From the NCBI GenBank assembly GCA_033442325.1, contig JAWQFM010000023.1, forward strand, positions 1,156,056-1,220,055: a stretch of 64,000 nt of DNA, written 5' to 3'. Shown piece by piece: positions 33,414-44,218 of this stretch; the stretch's first letter is position 1, and each line of letters begins with the position of its first letter. A program made the translations under genes and the position numbers. The notes under the pieces were generated by a model that ran no database searches, was not told the DNA's origin, and saw only the letters and a list, made by a program, of their open reading frames with translations. Origin of the DNA: Salpingoeca rosetta. Taxonomy: Eukaryota; Protista; Choanoflagellata.

Positions 33414-34491
33414 CAGGCACACACGCACCGGCATGCAATAGAAGCCAAAGTGGATGCCCGGGACATAGCAGCCGAGCATGCCAAAGGTGATGCCCAGGAG
33501 ATCAAGCTGCAGCCAGCGCAGGCTCGTCTTCTCACTGATGTGCGGCAGAAACAGATGAAACAGCCCAGATGCGAGCAAGCAGGCCTTCATGGGATGTGGC
33601 ACGTGCAGCAGCTTGGGTGAGACACAGGGTCGTGCTTTGAGTCGTTCTGAGCTTACAAGCAAGTCGTTCTGAGCTGATAAGCATTCGTGCAGTCTCTCGC
33701 ACACAGATGCGCACACACACACACACACAAACACACACCTGAACGCAGATGAGATATGCGTTGAGGACAAAGCGATCTGTCTCGAGTTGGGCGGCATCCG
33801 TTGGAGCACCATCCGCGTCCACGATGGGCTGCGTCTGATCCTTGGCAAAGAGAACGGCGTTGTTCCACACAAACGCAGAGAAGCCCCAAATGAAGCCGAG
33901 GAGGTGTGTCCAGATGTTGAGCAGCTCATTGTGCAAGCCACATATCCTATCAGCAAGCGTGGTGATGTGAGCGCGTGTGCATTAGGGCTGATGGGAGTGC
34001 GCGGTGGCTCATGGGCATCGGACTTGGAACCACGGGTATGCTGGCAGGAGTAGGAACAGTGAATGCCGCTCAACGCAAGCGCACACACGTCATGAGACAT
34101 TGCCGGTATGTGAGAAACGCTCTGTAGCCCGTGAAGATGTAAGGGTTGTCCTGCAAATGCACCGGAATCTGCAGTTGTTTGTGGTGGAACAGCGTGTGAG
34201 CTGTTGCGGCTAGGGCCAGGCGCAAGGCCGAGAGGGTCACAAGCCAGTACTGGTCGGAAAGGAAGCTGCACAAGGAAAAGCAACACACACAGACACAGAC
34301 ACAGACACACACAGACACACACAGACACACACAAACACACACCAGCGCACACACACACACACATACACACACACACACACACAGACACATACCTGATCGA
34401 AGGTGTATAGCCTGCGATGGGGCGGAAGCGAGTCGTGGTCCTTCATGCCACTGCCACCACCACTGACACCAGCGTGCATCTTCATCTTCAT
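32194..34491 (-). CDS. Progestin/adipoQ receptor family (hemolysin-III/CREST) 7-TM protein, PAQR3-like; multi-exon
   Basis: Motifs DNPYIFTGYR, HNELLNIWTHLLG, SGLFHLF, LQLDLLGI, FYISRFPER..PGSFDIFCSSHQWWH. The zinc-binding His residues are retained. Confidence 0.92.
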
Positions 34492-34611
34492 CAACTTCCG
34501 CCCACCAAACAGCTCGCCGATTTGACCAATCAGCGCTCACCAAAACATTTCTTTCCCATCTATTATTGTTGTGCTTGCTGGCAGCGAACAGGAAGGACAG
34601 CAGCAGCGGCG
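34492..34611. promoter_or_regulatory. Putative 120-bp bidirectional promoter/5' region with a CCAAT-box-like element
   Basis: Divergent ATGs at 34491 (-) and 34612 (+). TGACCAATCAG near 34523-34533. Confidence 0.45.
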
Positions 34612-35003
34612 ATGGCGGCGATGGAGGCGGTGGGCGTGAGCAGCGGCGCGATCGAGCGCTTCGTGCAGACCTTGCAGCAGCAGTTCCCGGAGACGTACAA
34701 GGAGATGACAACGCAGGAGGCGTGCACGTCGATCGTGGTGCCTCGAACCAAAGACAGCCAGTGTGCATACATTGATGTGATGCGCGAAGAGAACAAAGAC
34801 AATGTTGGTCGAGCCACTGTGTTTGTGTCGCACGCTTGGCGCTACAAGATTGTCGACGTGCTCACGACCTTGCTGGAGTTTGCTGCTGAGGAAGGGCAGA
34901 GTGGCAGCAGCAAGACGTAATTTTGGTTTGACTTGTTCATCAATAGTCAACACGTCAACGTCACAGCAAACCTTCCTCAAGACTGGTACGCATTTTGCGT
35001 GTG

Positions 35004-35073
<70 letters not shown>

Positions 35074-35164
35074 CGTTTGTGCTTGTAAGTACTGTCTCGT
35101 CTCTCGCGCTTCGTCTTCTACGCTCTCTCTCACTCTCACACACACTCTCACACACACACACACA

Positions 35165-35195
<31 letters not shown>

Positions 35196-36812
35196 ACTCA
35201 CTCACTCACCCCCCTCCCCTCTCTCTCCCTCTCCCTCTCACCCTTGCCCAACCACATCACCAACCTGTGCCTGACATCCTCCAACAACACTCGCTCCCGC
35301 ATCCTCAACCCCCCCCCCCCCCCCCCCAAACAAAACAACCGCAGGTGGAGCACGACATTCAAGAAGTCGATTCGGCAGATTGGCAAGGTGCTGCTGGTCC
35401 TGACGCCCTGGAATGACCCCGTGCCGCTGACGCGTGCATGGTGTCTGTGGGAGATCTTCTGCAGCATCAGTCAAGCTGACGTGGACTTGCAGATCCGCCT
35501 TCCCTCGCAGCAGCGCCACGCCCTCAGGGACGCCATCACGGAGACGCACACGGCCGTCACAAACATGCTTGTCGAGGTGCAGGCAGAGAAGGCAGAGGCG
35601 TGGAAGAAGGAGGACAAGGACATGATCTTCCGCGCCATCCAATCAACCGTCGGCTTCACCGCCCTAAACCGCGCCGTGAAGGACCGCATGCGCGCCTGGT
35701 GTCTCCGCACCGTGGACGCCTTTGTCACAGCCCACCAGCAGCAGCGTGAGGACGCCAACCGTGATGACACATGGGCTGCCGCGAAGTTCGCGCAACTGTG
35801 CCACCAAACGGGGATGGTAATGGTGACGTTTGGAGAACTCGACCGCGGCATCATGCACCTGACCAAGGCCCTGGATGTTGTGTCTGGGCTCAAGGATCAG
35901 CAGCTGCTTGCCTCAACCATTCACACCAGCTTGGGCAACGCCTACAACAGCAAAGGCGCCTTTGACCGTGCCCTCGAGCACCACAGCATTGTGCTGCAGC
36001 TCCGCCGCGAGCTGCTGCCCGCCCGCGATCCTCGCATCGCCGCCGCACACAACAACCTCGCAAACGCGTCTGCAAACAAAGGCAACAACGCGAGCGCCAT
36101 CGACCACTTTACGCAGGCCCTCGACATTCAGCTAGCTGCGGTGGGGGAGCGCGACCCCAACACCGCTGCCATGTACAACGATCTGGGCAACGTCTACAAC
36201 AACTGCCGCGACTACGCCCGCGCCATTGCCTGCCTCAACAAAGCACTCGGCACCAGGATTGCCCTCCTTGGTGAACACCACCCGGAGACGGCGGTCACGC
36301 TCAACAACATCGGCAGATCCTTTGGCGAGATGGGCGAGCACGGCAAGGCCGCCGGGTACTTCCAGCTCGCCCTCGAGTGCTTCCTCACCGTGTTGGGCCC
36401 CAACCACTCACGCACGCAACAAGCCGCTCACAACGCTGCCATGTCGCGCCAGATGGCCCTCGCCCACGGCATGCCCGTCACGCCCGTCACCATCCCGACT
36501 GCAGCACACGCCCCTACCAGCACCGCCAAACGCACCGGCACCAGCAGCCACAACAGCAACACACAGGCTCAGTCACTGCTCGTGCGGTTCCTCGCCGCAG
36601 TGTCCCCACCAACGCCACAGCAGCAGCTACTTGTTCGCTTCCTTGCAAAGACCCTTTCGACACGTGCTAGCCAGGACCCTGGCGCAGATCCGGGGCCCAC
36701 ATCACGCTTTCACGAAGCAGCCAAACACCAGCAAGAGCACAGCGATGACTCGCCTGGCGACGAGGAAGATCAGCATGTGCCCGTGCGCAAGGGGTGTTGT
36801 GGCATGCAGTGA
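34612..36812 (+). pseudogene. HET/TIR-like N-terminal domain plus kinesin-light-chain-type TPR repeats and C-terminal CaaX; in-frame TAA at 34918-34920 (pseudogene, null allele or base error). Exons 34612-34985, 35345-36812
   Basis: ATVFVSHAWRYK...KT*FWFDLFINSQH...W/WSTTFKKSIRQIGKVLLVLTPWNDPVPLTRAWCLWEI. ~42-aa TPRs such as HPETAVTLNNIGRSF. Ends RKGCCGMQ*. The frame continues cleanly past the single stop. Confidence 0.8.
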
Positions 36813-36822
36813 CGTTGCTCGG

Positions 36823-36971
<149 letters not shown>

Positions 36972-37044
36972 GGAGGAGCTTCCTTGCTTGTGGTGCCCTT
37001 GACACGCTGTTGATTGTGTTTTGCTTTGCGTCCTGGTAAATGGT

Positions 37045-39961
37045 TCAATACCAGCTGCTGGCAACAGAAACCAACACAGCAAGCACAAGCACAAGGAAAG
37101 AACACAAGCACAGAAGGTGAACACTGGAGGAAAACAAAAATGGTGCGAGGCAAGAAAGGGCATGTGAGGCCGAGGTAGCTTGCTCTTTGGCCAGACGCAA
37201 CAATTTGATCGCTTTGCCAACCTTCACACCGGCGGTCTTGAGCATCTCCAGGGTGAGCTCGCCCAACTCAACCAGCACAAGCAGATCTTCAAGGGTGTCA
37301 ATGCCGTGCTCCATCAGCGCTGCTTCGACATGCGGCAGCAGCGAGCGGCGGTTGAGCCATTGAATCAACTCGGGCTCAAATGCGCTTGAGGACGGGGACG
37401 AAGGGGTTGCAGGTGGTGGCGTCGAACGGGCCGTGGCAGTGGAGATCGAGGAAGATGACTGCACGGCAGACAAGTTAGAGGGGTGGAGTGAGCACGCGTG
37501 CCAAGCGGAAGAGGGGAAGGAGTGGATCATGGGTGCATGGGTGCATGGGTGCATGTCTGCACGAACTCACACACCATACCTGCGTGGATCGCCGCGCGGC
37601 TGCTGGTCCCTTCACTGCATGCTCCTCGCTCCTCGCGGAGACGATGACCTGGCGCACCTTCTCTGCAATGTCGCGCAGCTGCGACGTGCGGTCCACGCCG
37701 GCATCCACCGCAATCACTGCGTCAATGTCAAACAGCGACAGCACCACTTTGCGCACGCTCTTGTGCCGCTGTGGCGGTGGCAGGCGCAGCACCTGGGAAA
37801 AGAACTGGTCCAGCGCTGACGCCGTCTCCTTGCTCACAACATCCGGCAACTTCGTTGCCAGCCGCTTCAGGCGGTCAAACGAGTCGTACTCGCTCACTTC
37901 CGCCGCGCTCATAACATGGTGGTTGCTGTCGTGCCAGCCACTGCCAACGAAGAGCGGGACGATGCGGCGAAGGCGGATGTTGTCTGGATGCTGGCGAGCA
38001 AGCTGCTGCAGCTCCAGCATCGCCATCCACTCCAACAGCACGTTGTCGCACGTGTCAGTGTGGCCGAGCGAGCGCATCTGATGGATGGCACCGACGGAGA
38101 CGACGGGGCAGGCGACAGCACTGTTGTGCAGGGCTGTCATGCACGCGTGCTTGAAGTTGACGCCTGTCTCCAAGTTGTTGGCGTCCACAAAGGTTACCAG
38201 TCCGTGCTGCTCCAACTTTGGGTACAATGTCATCACCAAACCCCGGTTGCCGCGTTGCCTGTGACGTGGTGGTTGAATGTCGAAATCAGAAAGGAAGAGA
38301 GCGGGAAGGAAAGACGCCCAGTTCGCACCATACACACATACACACATACACACACGCACACACAAGTCCCACCTGTAGCTGATGAAGGCATCGTATTTGC
38401 CCTGCTGACCCATAACTGGCAAGAGTGGACCATACTTGGCGACCAGATCCCCTGGTGACAGCAGCTGTGAGCGGCCAACGCGAAGCGCTTTCTTGTTCAT
38501 GTGATGGGTGTGCACGTCCTCGAAGAACAGCAGTCTGGTGTCATTGAATGGCAGCAACAACGTGGCCTTGAGCTCGGGGTAGCGCTGCGTGACAGCTGTT
38601 GTGATGGTGTCGTACAGCATGTGCAGCAGCGTGCGAGGACGTGCAGTCATGACCTTGATCTTGATGCCGCCAACAGCCGGCACGAGCTGTAATTCGATCT
38701 CAGCCACGTCCATGAAGATTACGGCGTCTGTCCGGCTCAACATGGGCGGTTCCGTTGCACCATGCTGCATGTGTGCCATCACGCGTGCCAGAACCATCGG
38801 GAACAGGCCCTCTGGCAGGAAGGAGGCTTGCTGCGTGTCTGCAATCTTGGCGCTTACACCCCTCTTGAACTCCCTCAGGCTGAAGGCGACGTAGGCTGTC
38901 TTCTCCTCATATCCAGCGTATGGATTGGCCTGCTGTGCTGCTGCCGTGCTCAGAGTCACCGACGACGACGCCTGTTCATCCTCCAGCGTCATCGGCAGGA
39001 TGGCTGGGACAAGGAATTGTTGGTGGTGGTGCTGCTGCTGTTGAGGGCTGGACAGCCGCACCATTGGTGCCGTGTAGTCGACACACAACCCGTACTCCAT
39101 CATGAGTTGGAGGAAGGGCTCAATCGTGCCACCTTCCAAGTCCTTCCACAGCACATCCAGCAGGCGACGGTGCAGGATGCCGCGGTCAACCAGGTCGTCC
39201 CACAGCTGCGCACCAACGGCCCTCGCCTCGCCATCCCGCACATCGTGATGCAGATCAAAGTTTCGGATGACGCGGGTCATCGTGTCCACCGCCCACTGCG
39301 GGCTCAGGATCACATAGTCGTCCATGCCAGGCACGCTGTCGTAGTACAATACCATGGAGTACAGGTGCAGGAACTGGAGGCAGGCCTTCGTCTCCTGGCG
39401 TGTGCGCAGCCCACACGTGTGCGCAATCTCCACCACCTCGTCAAACGTCAGCAGCGGTCGCTTCTCGTCGCGGGCGATGGCATTGAGCTTGTCATAGAGG
39501 TGGAGGTACGGCACAGCCACCTCCTGGCTCACGTACTCCTGCGCCAGTGCTGTGGAGGAGATGGTCTGGCGCAGGTCCTGGATCATGGGATCATGGATGG
39601 ACTGGGTGTTGTCGACGGGCCAGAACCACAGACCATGCTTTTCGTTGTGGATGACGCCAGGGAAAGCGGGGTTGTGGCGCAGGCGGCTGTAGATGCCACG
39701 CGAGATGTTCTCGTGCTGTTTCCGCTGACTAACCACATCAGCGAAGGTGCCGACGATGAGGACGGGTGCGCCCTTTGCGTGGAGGTGGAGGGAGGAGAGC
39801 CAGTGCTCCATAAACTCCCACGTCTCGGTCCGCTTGCTCTCGTCTTGGTGCAACAGGTCCTCCATGGAGAACACCAGCAGGTACACCGCGTACCTGGTGT
39901 GGGTTGTATGTGTGGTGGGGGGGGGGGTTGGAATATATTGGGGTGAGTGAGTGAGGAGGCC

Positions 39962-40027
<66 letters not shown>

Positions 40028-40579
40028 GGCTCACTTGGTGAGGAAGAAAGGGTGGAAGATGTAGAAGGTGGACTGGCCGCCCAGGTCAAACACCTTGAAC
40101 GTGACGCGCGCTTTGCCCTCGCCCATGACGGCGTCCACGTTGAACTCTTTGATCGCTTTCTCCATTTCCTCCGCAGACATGCCGGTTGTGGCAGTGGTGC
40201 TGTTGTCACGCGCAGCAGCATCACTTTGGCTGGAAGGGTTTAGGGTGGTCTGCTTCTTGGGTGCAGACGCACACATGTGAGACGGCTTGCTGGGCTTTGG
40301 GACAGTCGCTGGCGACGTGCGGGAGGATGGCCGTGACCGCGTCTCCTTCGCATTCTGTAACTGCTCCTTCTTCGACTTTGAACCCGTCGCCTTCTCTGCC
40401 TTCTCGGCTTCTTGTTGCCGCTGTTGGTGCTGGTGCTGGGCAACGCGGCTCTCCAAGTCGGCCTTCGCCTTCATCATCGCCTGCTTCATCTGCAAGTCCA
40501 CGCCAGATTCCTGCACCAGCGCCGTGCCGCAGAGGCTGCGCATCAACTCCGAGATCTCCGCATCCAGCTCCTGCAAAGG

Positions 40580-40666
<87 letters not shown>

Positions 40667-43600
40667 TGAGGGGATGATCGTGTCAACCACCACCTCTTTT
40701 CACACCCAGGCGTCGCACACATCACATGCTCGCACCAGACAAGGGTACACACCTGCCAGTCGTGAACGTCCATGGACTCGACGATAACGGCGAGGTCAGT
40801 TGTGGCGGCGCCATGCGTGGAGTGCTCGTGTTTGTTGAACATGTGACCCATGAGCGAGTGAAACGTGCTGGTTTTGCCGGCGCGCCCTTGGCCAATGAAG
40901 ATGAGCTTGGCCCTGCTAGCCATGGTCGCGTTGAAGCGCGCAATGATCTCCCGCATGTGCTGCTGGAGGCGCTCCTTGCGCCCCTGCTCGGGCTGGTGAT
41001 GATGACGTGGCGGCGGCGGTGGTGGTCATGGTGATGATGGTGTGAGTGAGCGCGCGTCATCATGTTGGGGAAGCAGATCATACCGGTGATCAAAATTTGT
41101 ACAATGGGATGCACACATGCACATGCGTTGTACCATCTCTGATCACTCACGTCTGACGCTGCTGTAATTTCTTGCTTGGGTTTGGTGGAAGGGGTGGACG
41201 CACGTGGGTCTTTTGTGTTCTGCTGCTGCTGCTGGCTGCCTGGGTTGAGCCCCTCGATGCTGGTGATGGCAGTGTGGCCACTGGCCGTTGCTACATAGTG
41301 AGGAGTTTCTCCCTGCCAGTGTGAAGATATGGCAGAATGTGATGAGGGGAGGGAAGAACACAGACCAGTAAGCAGTGCCACACCACCGAACTTGACACAC
41401 GAAAAGAATCTCACCTGCTTGTTCTTGACGGAAGCATCCGCGCCCTTCTCGAGGAGCAGCTTAACAATGGCGGGCTGGTTGTGCCTGCAGGCAACATGTA
41501 GCGGCGTGTCGCCCTGTGGTTGGGTCGTGGACGATGGGAGTGGGGAAGTAGGGCAAGTGGTGAGAATTCCTGGCAACATACACACAGCTCGCTGCACGAA
41601 TGCACCACCCGCTTCACAAGCACGAGCACACATATGCACACGCACCTGTTCATCTTGTTGGTCTACATCTGCGTGGTCCTGTTCAACGAGGGAGGTGACG
41701 GCTGCGACATTGCCGGCCTTGCAGGCAGTGAGCATGTACTCGTGCGGTTGCTGCTCGTTGTCTGCAGCTGCACCCTGTCGCTGGTCTGCTTGGTCGCCGT
41801 GGGTAGTGTCGTGTTGCTTCTTCTTCTTCGCCTCGCGGGCTTCATTGAAAGCGGCCTTGCCCTCATCGTCGAAGGGCCTGTGATTCCACATAAGATGAGA
41901 CGCAAGCATCACGCAGAATGTGAGAGGAGAAGGGTTGAGAGAAGAGAGAAAGCGCATGACAAGAAGGGAAGGGCACGCGAGGACTGACCAGTCGCCTGTG
42001 TCGATCTCGCGGTCGACGGGCAGCGCGGCACCAAAGGCGCGAGCAGTGGCGGGGGAGTTCTTGCAAACCCTGAACATGGGGACACGTGGGGGATGTGTGT
42101 TGGTTGAGGGGGAGGGAGCAAGTGTGGTGCGTGGGTCAGGAGGGCTAGTGGTTTTGGAGAAATGCAAGGCAAGCAGGGAGCAGCGTGTGTTGTGGCATGT
42201 ACTCAGAGTGGTGATGAATCACATTGCCCACAACGAGACACAAACGTGCATCAGGTAAGTGCACCACACCACAATCAACCAACCAGAGCCGTTTCAGCGT
42301 GCGATTCTGGTCCAGGGCGGCTCCCAGCGCCGCACCGCCAGCTGGGGTGATGGAGTTCTTTCTCAAGCTGCAAGTGGCCAGCAGTACATGTGGGAAGAGA
42401 ACGCAAGCACGGGGAGAGGAAACGGGAAGTGAGGGAAAAGCAACAAGGATCAGTGTCATGGATGAACGTGGGTTGTGGATGAATCACGTGCGTACAACTT
42501 TGAGTTGCAATGGCACAAGGGCAATGACAGTTGCACAAGATATATGGCAGCACGCATGTCACAGTGCTTGATGGATTTTGGGGGGGGGGGCATTGCTTTG
42601 CGCAACAAGCACCCAGCAGAAGCGTTGTGCATGGCTGGCTGTGCTTCGATTAGTTCATGGGTCCTCCAGGAACAACGACAGAGGCACTGCACCACACGGT
42701 TCTTCCACTCACGAGAGTATGTCGAGAGCCGTGTTGTGCTTCAGCATTTCTGCCAACGCCACGGCGCCGGGGTCGCCGATGGAGTTTTGTCCTAGACTGT
42801 GCACACAAGAGAGAAGAGGAGTGGGTGATTGATGTCAGCATACTCGATGGTGACGAGGAGTGGTGACTGGGTGCCAAGAATATGGGGTGGTAAGCAGCTG
42901 TTGAGTTCACCCCACCACACATGTGCATGCGCACATCCACAGCACGGCGCATTGTGCAACAGGCAGTGAGGCAGCCCATTTCCATCCACACATGAATGTG
43001 TGTTCACACTCACCCGAGTGTTGTCATGGTCGTGTTGTGTTTCAGCACCTCCGCCAACGCCACAGCGCCCTCATCGCCAATGGGGTTGATTCCCAGGCTG
43101 TCAATGTGATATCATGCCACACAGGGCAAAGATGTCACATGGGTGAGCAAGAGTGAATGCGTGACGATTCACGTGGTGTGGCAACAGTCGTTGAACCCAC
43201 CCACCGCGCATGCGCATGCGCACACCCACAACACGTGACAAGGTGCAACGCCAGTGACGCAGCGCATTTCCATTCATATATACATGTGTGTGCACACTCA
43301 CATAAGTGATGTCATGGTCGTGTTGTGCTTCAGCATCTCCGCCAACGCCACAGCGCCTTTGCCGCCGATGGAATTGTTGTGCAGGCTGTTAAGGTGGTAT
43401 GATGCCACGCAGGGTTATGATGCCACATGGGCGAGGAAGCGTGAGTGCGTGATGATCGCTGTAGGTGGCAACACAGTCATTGAACTCACCCACCACACAT
43501 CACACGCGCATGCGCACACCCACAGAACAGCACGTCATCAACATGCAACATGACGCAGCCCATGTCCAACCATATGTGCACGTGTGTTCACACTCACTAG

Positions 43601-44218
43601 AGTGTTGGCATGGTCGCGTTGTGCTTCAGCATCTCCGCCAATGCTGAAGCGCCTGCATCGCTGATGGCATTGTAGTTCAGGCTGTCAACACGGAAGGGGG
43701 GGGGGGTCAAAGCACGTGCCATGAGCACACAAAGAAGAGAAGAGGATGGTCAAGAACCAGCATTAACAGCTAGACAGCTCAACCAAAACTGCATGCCACG
43801 CGCAGTCCCACATCACCACGTACTCAAGCTTGTTGAGGCAGGTGTTGTCCTTGAGCGCCTGTGCCACCGCCTTCACCCCACTGTCGCCGAGGCCAGCCCC
43901 ATAAAAGCTGCCAGTCAACATATGCCGAAAGCAAGAGACAAGCAGGCCATACGTCACAGACGGCTATGGCGATCGTGGTTGAAGTACACGACAAGCATAG
44001 CAACAAGACAAGCAGAGAGCAGACCATGCAGGGTGCACGCTGTACTCCAACACAGCAATGGCCGTTTTGGTATTCACTTACTCCACTTCCTTCCCACACA
44101 TGTTGTTGGCGATGGCCCTGATCTTGTCCTTCACCGATTTCTCCCTCCACGCTAGCAATTTCGTCTGCGCCAGCAAGGTCTCCACCTCCTCCCTCGCCCT
44201 CTTCTCTCCGCCGGACAT
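37045..44218 (-). CDS. ROCO-family protein: RI-like LRRs, ankyrin repeats, ROC GTPase, COR, TIR, SAM, hydrophobic C-terminal tail; multi-exon
   Basis: LRRs of the form LxxNxIGDxGAxALAEMLKHNTT. ANK GDTPLHVACRHNQPAIVKLLLEKGAD. ROC motifs KLIFIGQGRAGKTS, FKVFDLGGQSTFYIFHPFFLT, VLIVGTFAD. COR motifs LQFLHLYSMVLYY, VILSPQW, FLVPAILP, FLPEGLF. TIR YDAFISYR...TFVDANNLETG...DNVLLEW. SAM WLNRRSLLPHVEAALMEHGIDTLEDLL...LKTAGVKVGKAIKLL. Confidence 0.9.
42284..43907 (-). repeat. Array of six 84-nt, phase-2/phase-2 LRR exons (43907-43824, 43681-43598, 43385-43302, 43097-43014, 42796-42713, 42367-42284) with partly homologous introns
   Basis: Each exon is exactly 84 nt between AG and GT. Introns 43386-43597 and 43098-43301 align by eye (tgatgccac..., ggcaaca..., gcgcatgcgcacacccaca, cactcac). 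Confidence 0.9.

Follow-up and report, generated by a model that had tools for sequence, protein, structure and literature searches.

NLRs are absent from choanoflagellates, the closest relatives of animals, for which Ank-TIR combinations have been noted (Richter et al. 2018, PMC6040629); this leaves open how these organisms detect threats inside the cell. Here, we describe a gene of the choanoflagellate Salpingoeca rosetta, PTSG_11050, which lies in a stretch of 64,000 nucleotides of contig JAWQFM010000023.1 (positions 1,156,056-1,220,055; assembly GCA_033442325.1), called the window hereafter, and which raises two questions: does this organism possess an NLR-like repertoire, and does a Roc-COR switch gate a TIR domain? 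An earlier note, made from the sequence of the window, had read the gene as a candidate innate-immune executor. We find that PTSG_11050 is a kinase-less ROCO protein with the domain order LRR-ANK-Roc-COR-TIR-SAM. On balance, we lean towards the view that it is a receptor-switch of the ROCO type with an enzymatic TIR output, in which Roc-COR would gate production of the messenger cyclic ADP-ribose (cADPR), and that it belongs to a surveillance repertoire.

Domain architecture and gene structure

Domains were called with Pfam on the PTSG_11050 protein, and E-values and bit scores were compared with the Pfam cut-offs. Matches above cut-off were obtained for LRR_6 (4.8e-22), Ank_2 (1.1e-13), Roc (1.4e-16; 61.2 bits, cut-off 27), COR-A (3.1e-17; 63.3 bits, cut-off 35.3) and TIR_2 (7.1e-7; 30.2 bits, cut-off 28), and no kinase, WD40, NACHT or NB-ARC domain was found by Pfam in the spliced protein. 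The nucleotide motifs of the Roc domain are intact (G1 GQGRAGKTS, G3 DLGGQ and a G4-like GTFAD) and are conserved across 23 paralogs. PTSG_11050 therefore has the ROCO features that were examined, a Ras-like Roc domain with nucleotide motifs and a COR domain directly C-terminal of it; it lacks the NACHT or NB-ARC ATPase of STAND receptors, and its nucleotide switch is Roc-COR. This agrees with the earlier note, which had given the same domain order and had placed ROC-COR where a NACHT or NB-ARC domain would be. Between switch I and G3, Roc is interrupted by about 145 inserted residues (40570-40170); this insert is charged, rich in Gln, Lys and Ser, of low complexity and predicted to be coiled. 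It is also present in paralogs, with an identity of 0.83 for the closest eight.

The locus is already annotated, as protein searches returned the NCBI entry "hypothetical protein PTSG_11050" of S. rosetta (P0183, 1515 amino acids). The gene runs on the minus strand from 44218 to 37045, with the ATG at 44218-44216 and the stop codon at 37047-37045, and the coding span is exactly 37045-44218. A three-frame translation of this strand yielded pieces of RNI-type LRRs, ankyrin repeats, a Roc GTPase, COR, TIR and SAM, which are joined in a 16-exon model with GT-AG introns throughout and a single in-frame open reading frame (ORF) of 1534 amino acids. Our model is the same as PTSG_11050 at every residue except for one acceptor, which costs the NCBI model 19 amino acids of the LRR-ANK linker. 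The NCBI acceptor sits 57 nucleotides downstream, in the first linker/ANK exon (41877-41646), and we favour the upstream acceptor because paralogs retain DDEG residues there. For exon 1, the donor AT/GTGTGG was rejected, with the N-termini of paralogs pointing to GA/GTAAGT at 44082/44081. The splice junctions are supported by the identity with the NCBI model, by the presence of the same junctions in all annotated paralogs and by the open and conserved reading frame. The COR-TIR join requires no splicing, as a single exon with a continuous ORF encodes both COR and the first TIR strand. The TIR-internal junction AFISYR/QRGNRG is common to all annotated paralogs, and the TIR-to-SAM join depends on the intron 37579-37459. 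The proposal that one spliced gene joins LRR, ANK, ROC-COR, TIR and SAM is thus borne out by the exon model, the NCBI entry and Pfam, and the motifs quoted with it (AFISYR, HGLVTFVDANNLETG and DNVLLEW) are all present, as is the Glu codon. The features of the gene are as follows.

44082-44218, minus strand: exon 1, with the start codon (44218-44216) and a conserved helix-rich N-terminal leader; donor GA/GTAAGT, phase 2; matches the paralog N-termini (MSGGEKRAREEVE...)
41989-43907, minus strand: LRR block of seven exons (LRR_6), each with one 28-residue RNI-type LRR; introns all phase 2
43907-43824, 43681-43598, 43385-43302, 43097-43014, 42796-42713 and 42367-42284, minus strand: the six LRR exons of 84 nucleotides
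42069-41989, minus strand: the one LRR exon of 81 nucleotides
41151-41877, minus strand: linker and ankyrin repeats (Ank_2) in three exons (41877-41646, 41513-41415 and 41312-41151)
40753-40992, minus strand: Roc exon 1, with the P-loop GQGRAGKTS (40893-40867) and switch I; G1 conserved among paralogs
40035-40570, minus strand: Roc exon 2, with the insert of about 145 residues followed by the G3 motif DLGGQ (40087-40073); Roc is matched in two stretches
38373-39893, minus strand: large exon of 1521 nucleotides, with the C-terminal half of Roc (G4-like GTFAD), COR-A, COR-B and the first TIR strand
39508-38996, minus strand: COR-A, in the large exon
38830-38540, minus strand: COR-B, in the large exon
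From 38398, minus strand: first TIR strand, KYDAFISY(R), in the large exon
38259-38372, minus strand: phase-2 intron of 114 nucleotides within the TIR, after the first strand, holding a (TG)n microsatellite
37580-38258, minus strand: main TIR exon with an enlarged helical D region; the TIR domain extends from 38398 to about 37616
38032-38030, minus strand: candidate catalytic Glu (E1228 of PTSG_11050), in DNVLLEW
37458-37045, minus strand: last exon, with a Ser/Pro-rich linker, SAM and the hydrophobic end
37177-37380, minus strand: SAM domain, residues about 1405-1472; SAM_2 match, five-helix bundle and SAM structural matches
37048-37155, minus strand: copy-specific C-terminal extension, with a hydrophobic segment at 37116-37060 (residues 1493-1511), 4 residues before the stop codon

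The TIR domain and the activity of a sister protein

To place the TIR domain among its relatives, the TIR of a paralog was searched against 1.84 billion representatives, which gave 418 matches at E<1e-3, and an alignment and profile were made of 86 of these homologs. Positions conserved in at least 90% of these are S19, Y20 and R21 (the SYR of strand A), D46 (strand B), G53 (BB loop) and D92, L95 and E97 (DNVLLEW). The AlphaFold2 model obtained from this alignment has the strand-helix order of a TIR domain (predicted local distance difference test score (pLDDT) 93.2, predicted template modelling score 0.91); in it, the Glu sits close to where helix C (93-108) begins, and the helical D region is enlarged. 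Against PDB, the best match of the profile was the SARM1 TIR (E 1.8e-14), with Roq1 at 2e-10, and the alignment sets the family Glu on the Glu of SARM1 ...WVHKE..., which is E642. A single-sequence search of PDB gave a weak SARM1 match (E 0.004), which ended before the Glu. Foldseek ranked the plant NLR TIRs RUN1, SNC1, RPV1 and L6 first (E 2e-6), ahead of SARM1 and bacterial TIRs. With VIA-align, Z was 15.6 to RPV1/RUN1 and 12-15.6 to many TIRs; the comparison with the human SARM1 TIR gave a Z of 14.4, the lowest root-mean-square deviation (rmsd; 2.3 Å) and the highest identity (23-24%) over an alignment of all 140 residues. In these comparisons, which use a predicted structure, plant NLR TIRs and SARM1 are effectively tied. 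The description of the domain in the earlier note, a SARM1-like TIR that retains the catalytic Glu, is nevertheless supported because SARM1 is the best profile match and the Glu aligns to E642, and the check which that note had proposed, that the domain should model as a TIR with this Glu in place, gave a TIR fold in which helix C carries the Glu, at the position of E642. Judged by its sequence, the TIR of PTSG_11050 is predicted to be an enzymatically competent output module.

Recently, cADPR-producing TIRs have been found in S. rosetta (bioRxiv 10.64898/2026.04.20.719644, 22 April 2026). Row 33 of Table S4 of this preprint lists the S. rosetta protein F2UB80 (1352 amino acids, TIR 1034-1255, catalytic residue 1118) as active and as producing cADPR, with the column for NAD+ depletion left blank (10.64898/2026.04.20.719644). 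TIR activity was Glu-dependent in all cases, and most tested TIRs did not deplete NAD+; a Guillardia theta TIR of the same DNVLLEW-type clade is described in the text as having depleted NAD+ after overnight expression (10.64898/2026.04.20.719644). According to the legend of Figure 3, LRR, Roc and COR are among the architectures drawn, which the text does not discuss (10.64898/2026.04.20.719644).

The construct tested in that study corresponds to residues 1034-1255 of PTSG_12359 (P0007), and its E1118 is the Glu of DNVLLEW. Between this construct and the TIR of PTSG_11050, 24 of 223 positions differ (89% identity), and the SYR, BB-loop and DNVLLEW motifs are free of differences. Both proteins belong to the same family, with LRR, ANK, Roc, COR, TIR and a SAM-like end, and are about 80% identical over 1386 aligned residues. 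PTSG_12359 differs in that it is encoded at a separate locus, has 1352 amino acids and a shorter N-terminus, and ends 3 residues past ...AKKC, without a hydrophobic tail. An enzymatic TIR is thus already demonstrated for this family, on PTSG_12359. The TIR had been suggested either to deplete NAD+ or to make a signal. The second half of this suggestion is favoured: because the product of the paralog is cADPR and no NAD+ depletion is given for it in the table, a cADPR signal is more likely than exhaustion of NAD+. The supplements of PMC13142454 contain no S. rosetta entries.

A dispersed family with variable LRRs

Two protein searches returned 31 S. rosetta proteins of this family, encoded on many different scaffolds. 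Paralogs with the same architecture, which the earlier note had asked to be counted, amount to at least 25-31 dispersed genes, only one of which lies within the window. DNVLLEW is retained in 25 of the 31 proteins. For the eight closest paralogs, identity is lowest in the LRRs (0.53) and in SAM (0.67) and highest in Roc (0.93-0.94), COR (0.89-0.96) and TIR (0.90). Against PTSG_11382, the ratio of nonsynonymous to synonymous substitution rates (dN/dS) was 0.24 for both the TIR exon and the last exon and 0.19 for the Roc-C/COR exon; by this measure, Roc, COR, TIR and SAM are under purifying selection. When 39893-38540 was compared with 23 paralogs, the C-terminal half of Roc reached 87% identity over the whole set, against 30-70% for the flanking domains; strong constraint could account for this, and so could gene conversion between copies.

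Read depth provides separate evidence that many near-identical paralogs exist. The sequencing runs X1 and X16, which had been taken for RNA, behave like genomic DNA, with an even depth of about 21 over introns in X1, and the depth over the Roc-C, COR and TIR exons is 10-40 times the single-copy level. Outside S. rosetta, a complete transcriptome ORF from another eukaryote in EukProt (P0024, 1315 amino acids) encodes Roc, COR and TIR in one mRNA, so that the Roc-COR-TIR join has transcript-level support in a relative, and the green alga Cymbomonas and metagenomes also contain Roc-COR-TIR proteins. Several family members are fused to other modules: PTSG_12997 (P0188, 2282 amino acids) carries a PARP catalytic domain, PTSG_13176 (P0189) TNFR-Cys and PTSG_05418 (P0185) about 230 additional residues at the N-terminus. 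These three proteins share TIR-SAM-like or LRR-ANK parts with the family.

The SAM domain and the C-terminal tail

The isolated C-terminal piece of PTSG_11050 matches SAM_2 in Pfam with 21.9 bits (cut-off 20.5), as do 15 of 23 paralog pieces, and it is modelled as a five-helix bundle with a core pLDDT of about 90. With Foldseek, SAM domains of Eph receptors came first at a non-significant E of about 1, and a SAM profile had no match among PDB sequences. In a VIA search against 48,161 chains, the top 30 or so matches were almost only SAM domains (Z 8.1-6), among them SAM2 of SARM1 (Z 7.1, rmsd 1.9 Å); for helical domains, Z values of 6-8 are moderate. We call a SAM here because Pfam and the fold found in this wide search agree. 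The SAM fold of PTSG_11050 may self-associate. The SARM1-like clustering through SAM that had been envisaged is not supported by the arrangement of the protein, which has one SAM after the TIR, whereas SARM1 has two N-terminal of it; moreover, the isolated TIR of the paralog is active without a SAM.

The most hydrophobic stretch of the protein is formed by residues 1493-1511, for which the Kyte-Doolittle mean over 19 residues is 3.02 (next best 1.61). It is modelled as a helix and is followed by 4 residues. None of the 30 S. rosetta paralogs retrieved has the last 36 residues; they all stop 7-12 residues after SAM. In a DNA alignment with PTSG_11382, a 1-nucleotide indel lies just past ...GCCAAAGAGCA and the TGA of the paralog stands opposite TGC, from which it follows that the frame of PTSG_11050 continues through a T-rich former 3' untranslated region. 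Independent DNA-like contigs match this 3' end without differences, so the extension is not an assembly error. We therefore rejected the hydrophobic tail as a feature of the family: comparison of the sequences marks it as a recent, copy-specific accident, which could nonetheless serve as a tail anchor. Of the suggestion that the hydrophobic C-terminus may be a membrane anchor, the terminal hydrophobic segment is confirmed and conservation in the family is not.

In most close paralogs, the C-terminus reads ...AKKCDVDSSV, which places a Cys 7 residues from the end. The diverged S. rosetta members P0013, P0015 and P0020 have CaaX-like ends (CALM, CLLM and CVIA), and EukProt P0024 ends in CTIC. 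These boxes suggest prenylation, and other members may thus also be targeted to membranes, though in a different way.

Proposed mechanism and alternative explanations

We propose that the LRR/ANK part of PTSG_11050 binds a ligand or keeps the protein inactive, and that the nucleotide state of Roc-COR controls self-association. Self-association, aided by SAM, would gather the TIRs into active sites that cyclise NAD+ to the second messenger cADPR. If PTSG_11050 is expressed, the stop-loss tail, a tail-anchor-like hydrophobic helix, could tether it to a membrane. The pattern of the family would fit a repertoire of surveillance receptors, immune or stress-related, which is analogous and not homologous to NLRs. 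For this role, the family size, the variability of the LRRs and the design of one LRR per phase-2 exon are suggestive by analogy. A more far-reaching version, in which the 25-31 or so LRR-ANK-Roc-COR-TIR-SAM genes are the choanoflagellate counterpart of an NLR repertoire and signal by GTPase-gated TIR clustering and cADPR, with members sent to membranes by CaaX boxes or, in PTSG_11050, by a new tail anchor, is possible, though we consider it rather doubtful.

Several points weigh against the proposed mechanism. COR-B was matched at 1.9e-4 and 21.7 bits, under the Pfam cut-off of 27. The SAM is single and C-terminal, the TIR of the paralog was active without it, and the hydrophobic tail is not conserved in relatives. 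To our knowledge, there is no ROCO-TIR protein in which the nucleotide state of Roc-COR has been linked to TIR activity, and we know of no report of an immune phenotype or of induction. The cADPR activity is that of the isolated TIR of a paralog in E. coli, which is a different protein and a setting outside the choanoflagellate (10.64898/2026.04.20.719644).

Transcription of this particular copy provides the remaining points. RNA reads were compared over 37001-43000 in about 26% of each of two RNA-seq runs from 2026, for which growth conditions are unstated. In the two runs, 86% and 83% of the aligned reads are only 95-99% alike to PTSG_11050. All RNA reads have the other letter at many of the listed diagnostic positions (e.g. 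37346, 38400, 38504 and 39275), and the depth is zero on copy-specific ANK exons (bins 41001-41400 and 41601-41800) and near zero on LRR exons. At 37346, the other letter is found at multi-copy depth in the DNA-like run X1. No joints at the predicted introns were listed in either RNA run over this interval, in which microsatellite rows were skipped in three introns and splice joints there are hidden. As the RNA reads bear the letters of paralogs, the paralogs are expressed and PTSG_11050 is not detectably so in these samples. The reads neither confirm nor refute the splicing of PTSG_11050.

We consider two alternatives to a gated receptor-switch in surveillance, both of them unlikely. The first is a housekeeping or developmental ROCO protein, which would use cADPR or TIR interactions for calcium signalling, the cytoskeleton, settlement or rosette development and not for the sensing of pathogens. 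ROCO proteins of Dictyostelium and of animals act in chemotaxis, the cytoskeleton and trafficking, the paralogs are transcribed in ordinary cultures, and the purifying selection on Roc, COR, TIR and SAM would be expected of such a protein as well. However, the 25-31 or so dispersed paralogs, in which LRRs are the most divergent part and are encoded one per phase-2 exon, show the pattern of diversifying receptors that is also seen in brown-algal LRR-ROCO proteins (PMC11378527), and the fusion of some members to PARP or TNFR-Cys domains is a further point against a housekeeping role.

The second is that PTSG_11050 is a silent or decaying recent duplicate, which has lost its stop codon and is unexpressed, and that the tail anchor is an accident of a translated 3' untranslated region. 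The zero depth on the copy-specific ANK exons and the foreign letters at diagnostic positions point in this direction, as do the stop codon lost relative to PTSG_11382, the T-rich extension and the tail that none of 30 paralogs shares. On the other hand, the reading frame is open through all 16 exons, the splice sites are canonical, the catalytic and GTPase motifs are intact, dN/dS is 0.19-0.24 and the 3' end is reproduced by independent DNA-like contigs, so that an assembly error does not account for it. The RNA evidence comes from about a quarter of each of two runs, and receptor genes are often inducible.

We give a still lower probability to an executor in the style of SARM1, in which clustered TIRs exhaust NAD+ and kill or arrest the cell as an abortive defence, without a messenger. 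Among solved TIRs, that of SARM1 is closest by profile, and it has the best identity and rmsd of the structural matches; in addition, PTSG_11050 contains a SAM, and the Guillardia theta TIR of the DNVLLEW-type clade depleted NAD+. However, the S. rosetta paralog is listed for cADPR alone and most tested TIRs spared NAD+ (10.64898/2026.04.20.719644), and PTSG_11050 has neither the autoinhibitory ARM domain nor a tandem SAM ring. Finally, a non-enzymatic adaptor that provides TIR-TIR scaffolding only, as classically assumed for adaptors of animal TLRs, is very improbable: although many animal TIRs are adaptors and the TIRs of MyD88 and IL-18R-beta align structurally (Z about 13), the Glu is conserved and falls on E642, and the paralog TIR is active in a study in which activity was Glu-dependent in all cases (10.64898/2026.04.20.719644).

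Comparison with known systems

PTSG_11050 resembles SARM1 (human, Drosophila dSarm and C. elegans TIR-1) in that the SARM1 TIR is the closest by profile, the Glu falls on E642, a SAM is present in the same protein and cADPR is made by SARM1 as well as by the paralog PTSG_12359. PTSG_11050 differs in having LRR, ANK and Roc-COR, and its TIR exceeds that of SARM1 by about 85 residues and has a helical insertion in the D region; in addition, NAD+ depletion is not reported for the paralog. Because it has no ARM domain and a single SAM after the TIR in place of two before it, PTSG_11050 is not an orthologue of SARM1. Like other ROCO proteins, such as LRRK2, Chlorobium tepidum Roco and the Roco kinases of Dictyostelium, it carries LRR and ANK repeats N-terminal of Roc-COR and intact G1 and G3 motifs, and its GTFAD resembles the LRRK2-type motif. 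In contrast to these proteins, it is without kinase and WD40 domains, its output is TIR-SAM, its Roc domain is split by the insert of about 145 residues and its LRRs are RNI-type 28-mers.

The brown-algal LRR-ROCO proteins, which are candidate immune receptors, share with PTSG_11050 the ROCO core, one LRR per exon with phase-2 introns, and an expanded family with variable LRRs; they belong to another supergroup and are without TIR, ANK and SAM (PMC11378527). A ROCO-TIR fusion is described for the red alga Chondrus (TPR-ROCO-TIR; PMC11378527). Among animals, mollusc proteins of the Aplysia immunome combine TIR and ROC-COR in one protein, and a GTPase-linked route of TIR signalling has been proposed for them; these are TLR-like or MyD88-like, have transmembrane or Death domains, and are predictions only (PMC9334734). 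The plant TNLs RUN1, RPP1 and Roq1 have the same set of parts, a sensor LRR, a nucleotide switch and a catalytic TIR, and plant TIRs are the best structural matches (E 2e-6; Z 15.6). Whereas their switch is an NB-ARC STAND ATPase and their TIR is N-terminal, PTSG_11050 has a Roc-COR GTPase and a C-terminal TIR. The relation between the two switches is one of analogy and not homology.

With variable LRRs, a GTPase switch and a TIR, and with one member making cADPR, the family is a concrete candidate for threat sensing in an organism that is genetically tractable. It would offer the ROCO and LRRK2 field a member with an easily measured small-molecule output, and the TIR field a switch that is not of the STAND type. 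The locus itself is worth less, as the gene is annotated, the TIR of a sister protein is characterised and no expression was detected.

The neighbouring gene and sequence context

A convergent neighbour lies on the plus strand at 34411-36812. Its first exons encode ...ATVFVSHAW..., ...FWFDLFINSQH... and ...LTRAWCLWEI..., motifs reminiscent of a Glu-containing TIR- or HET-like domain, and TPR_12/TPR_10 repeats follow (3.3e-31). This gene was considered as a second TIR gene, which is not supported, as Pfam finds TPR repeats alone. The G+C content of the window is about 55-60%, and (CA)n/(TG)n microsatellites occur in many introns. Within PTSG_11050, long (TG)n/(CA)n microsatellites are found in three introns, at 38327-38367, 39955-40034 and 40573-40677, and another lies just downstream of the gene, at 36830-36950.

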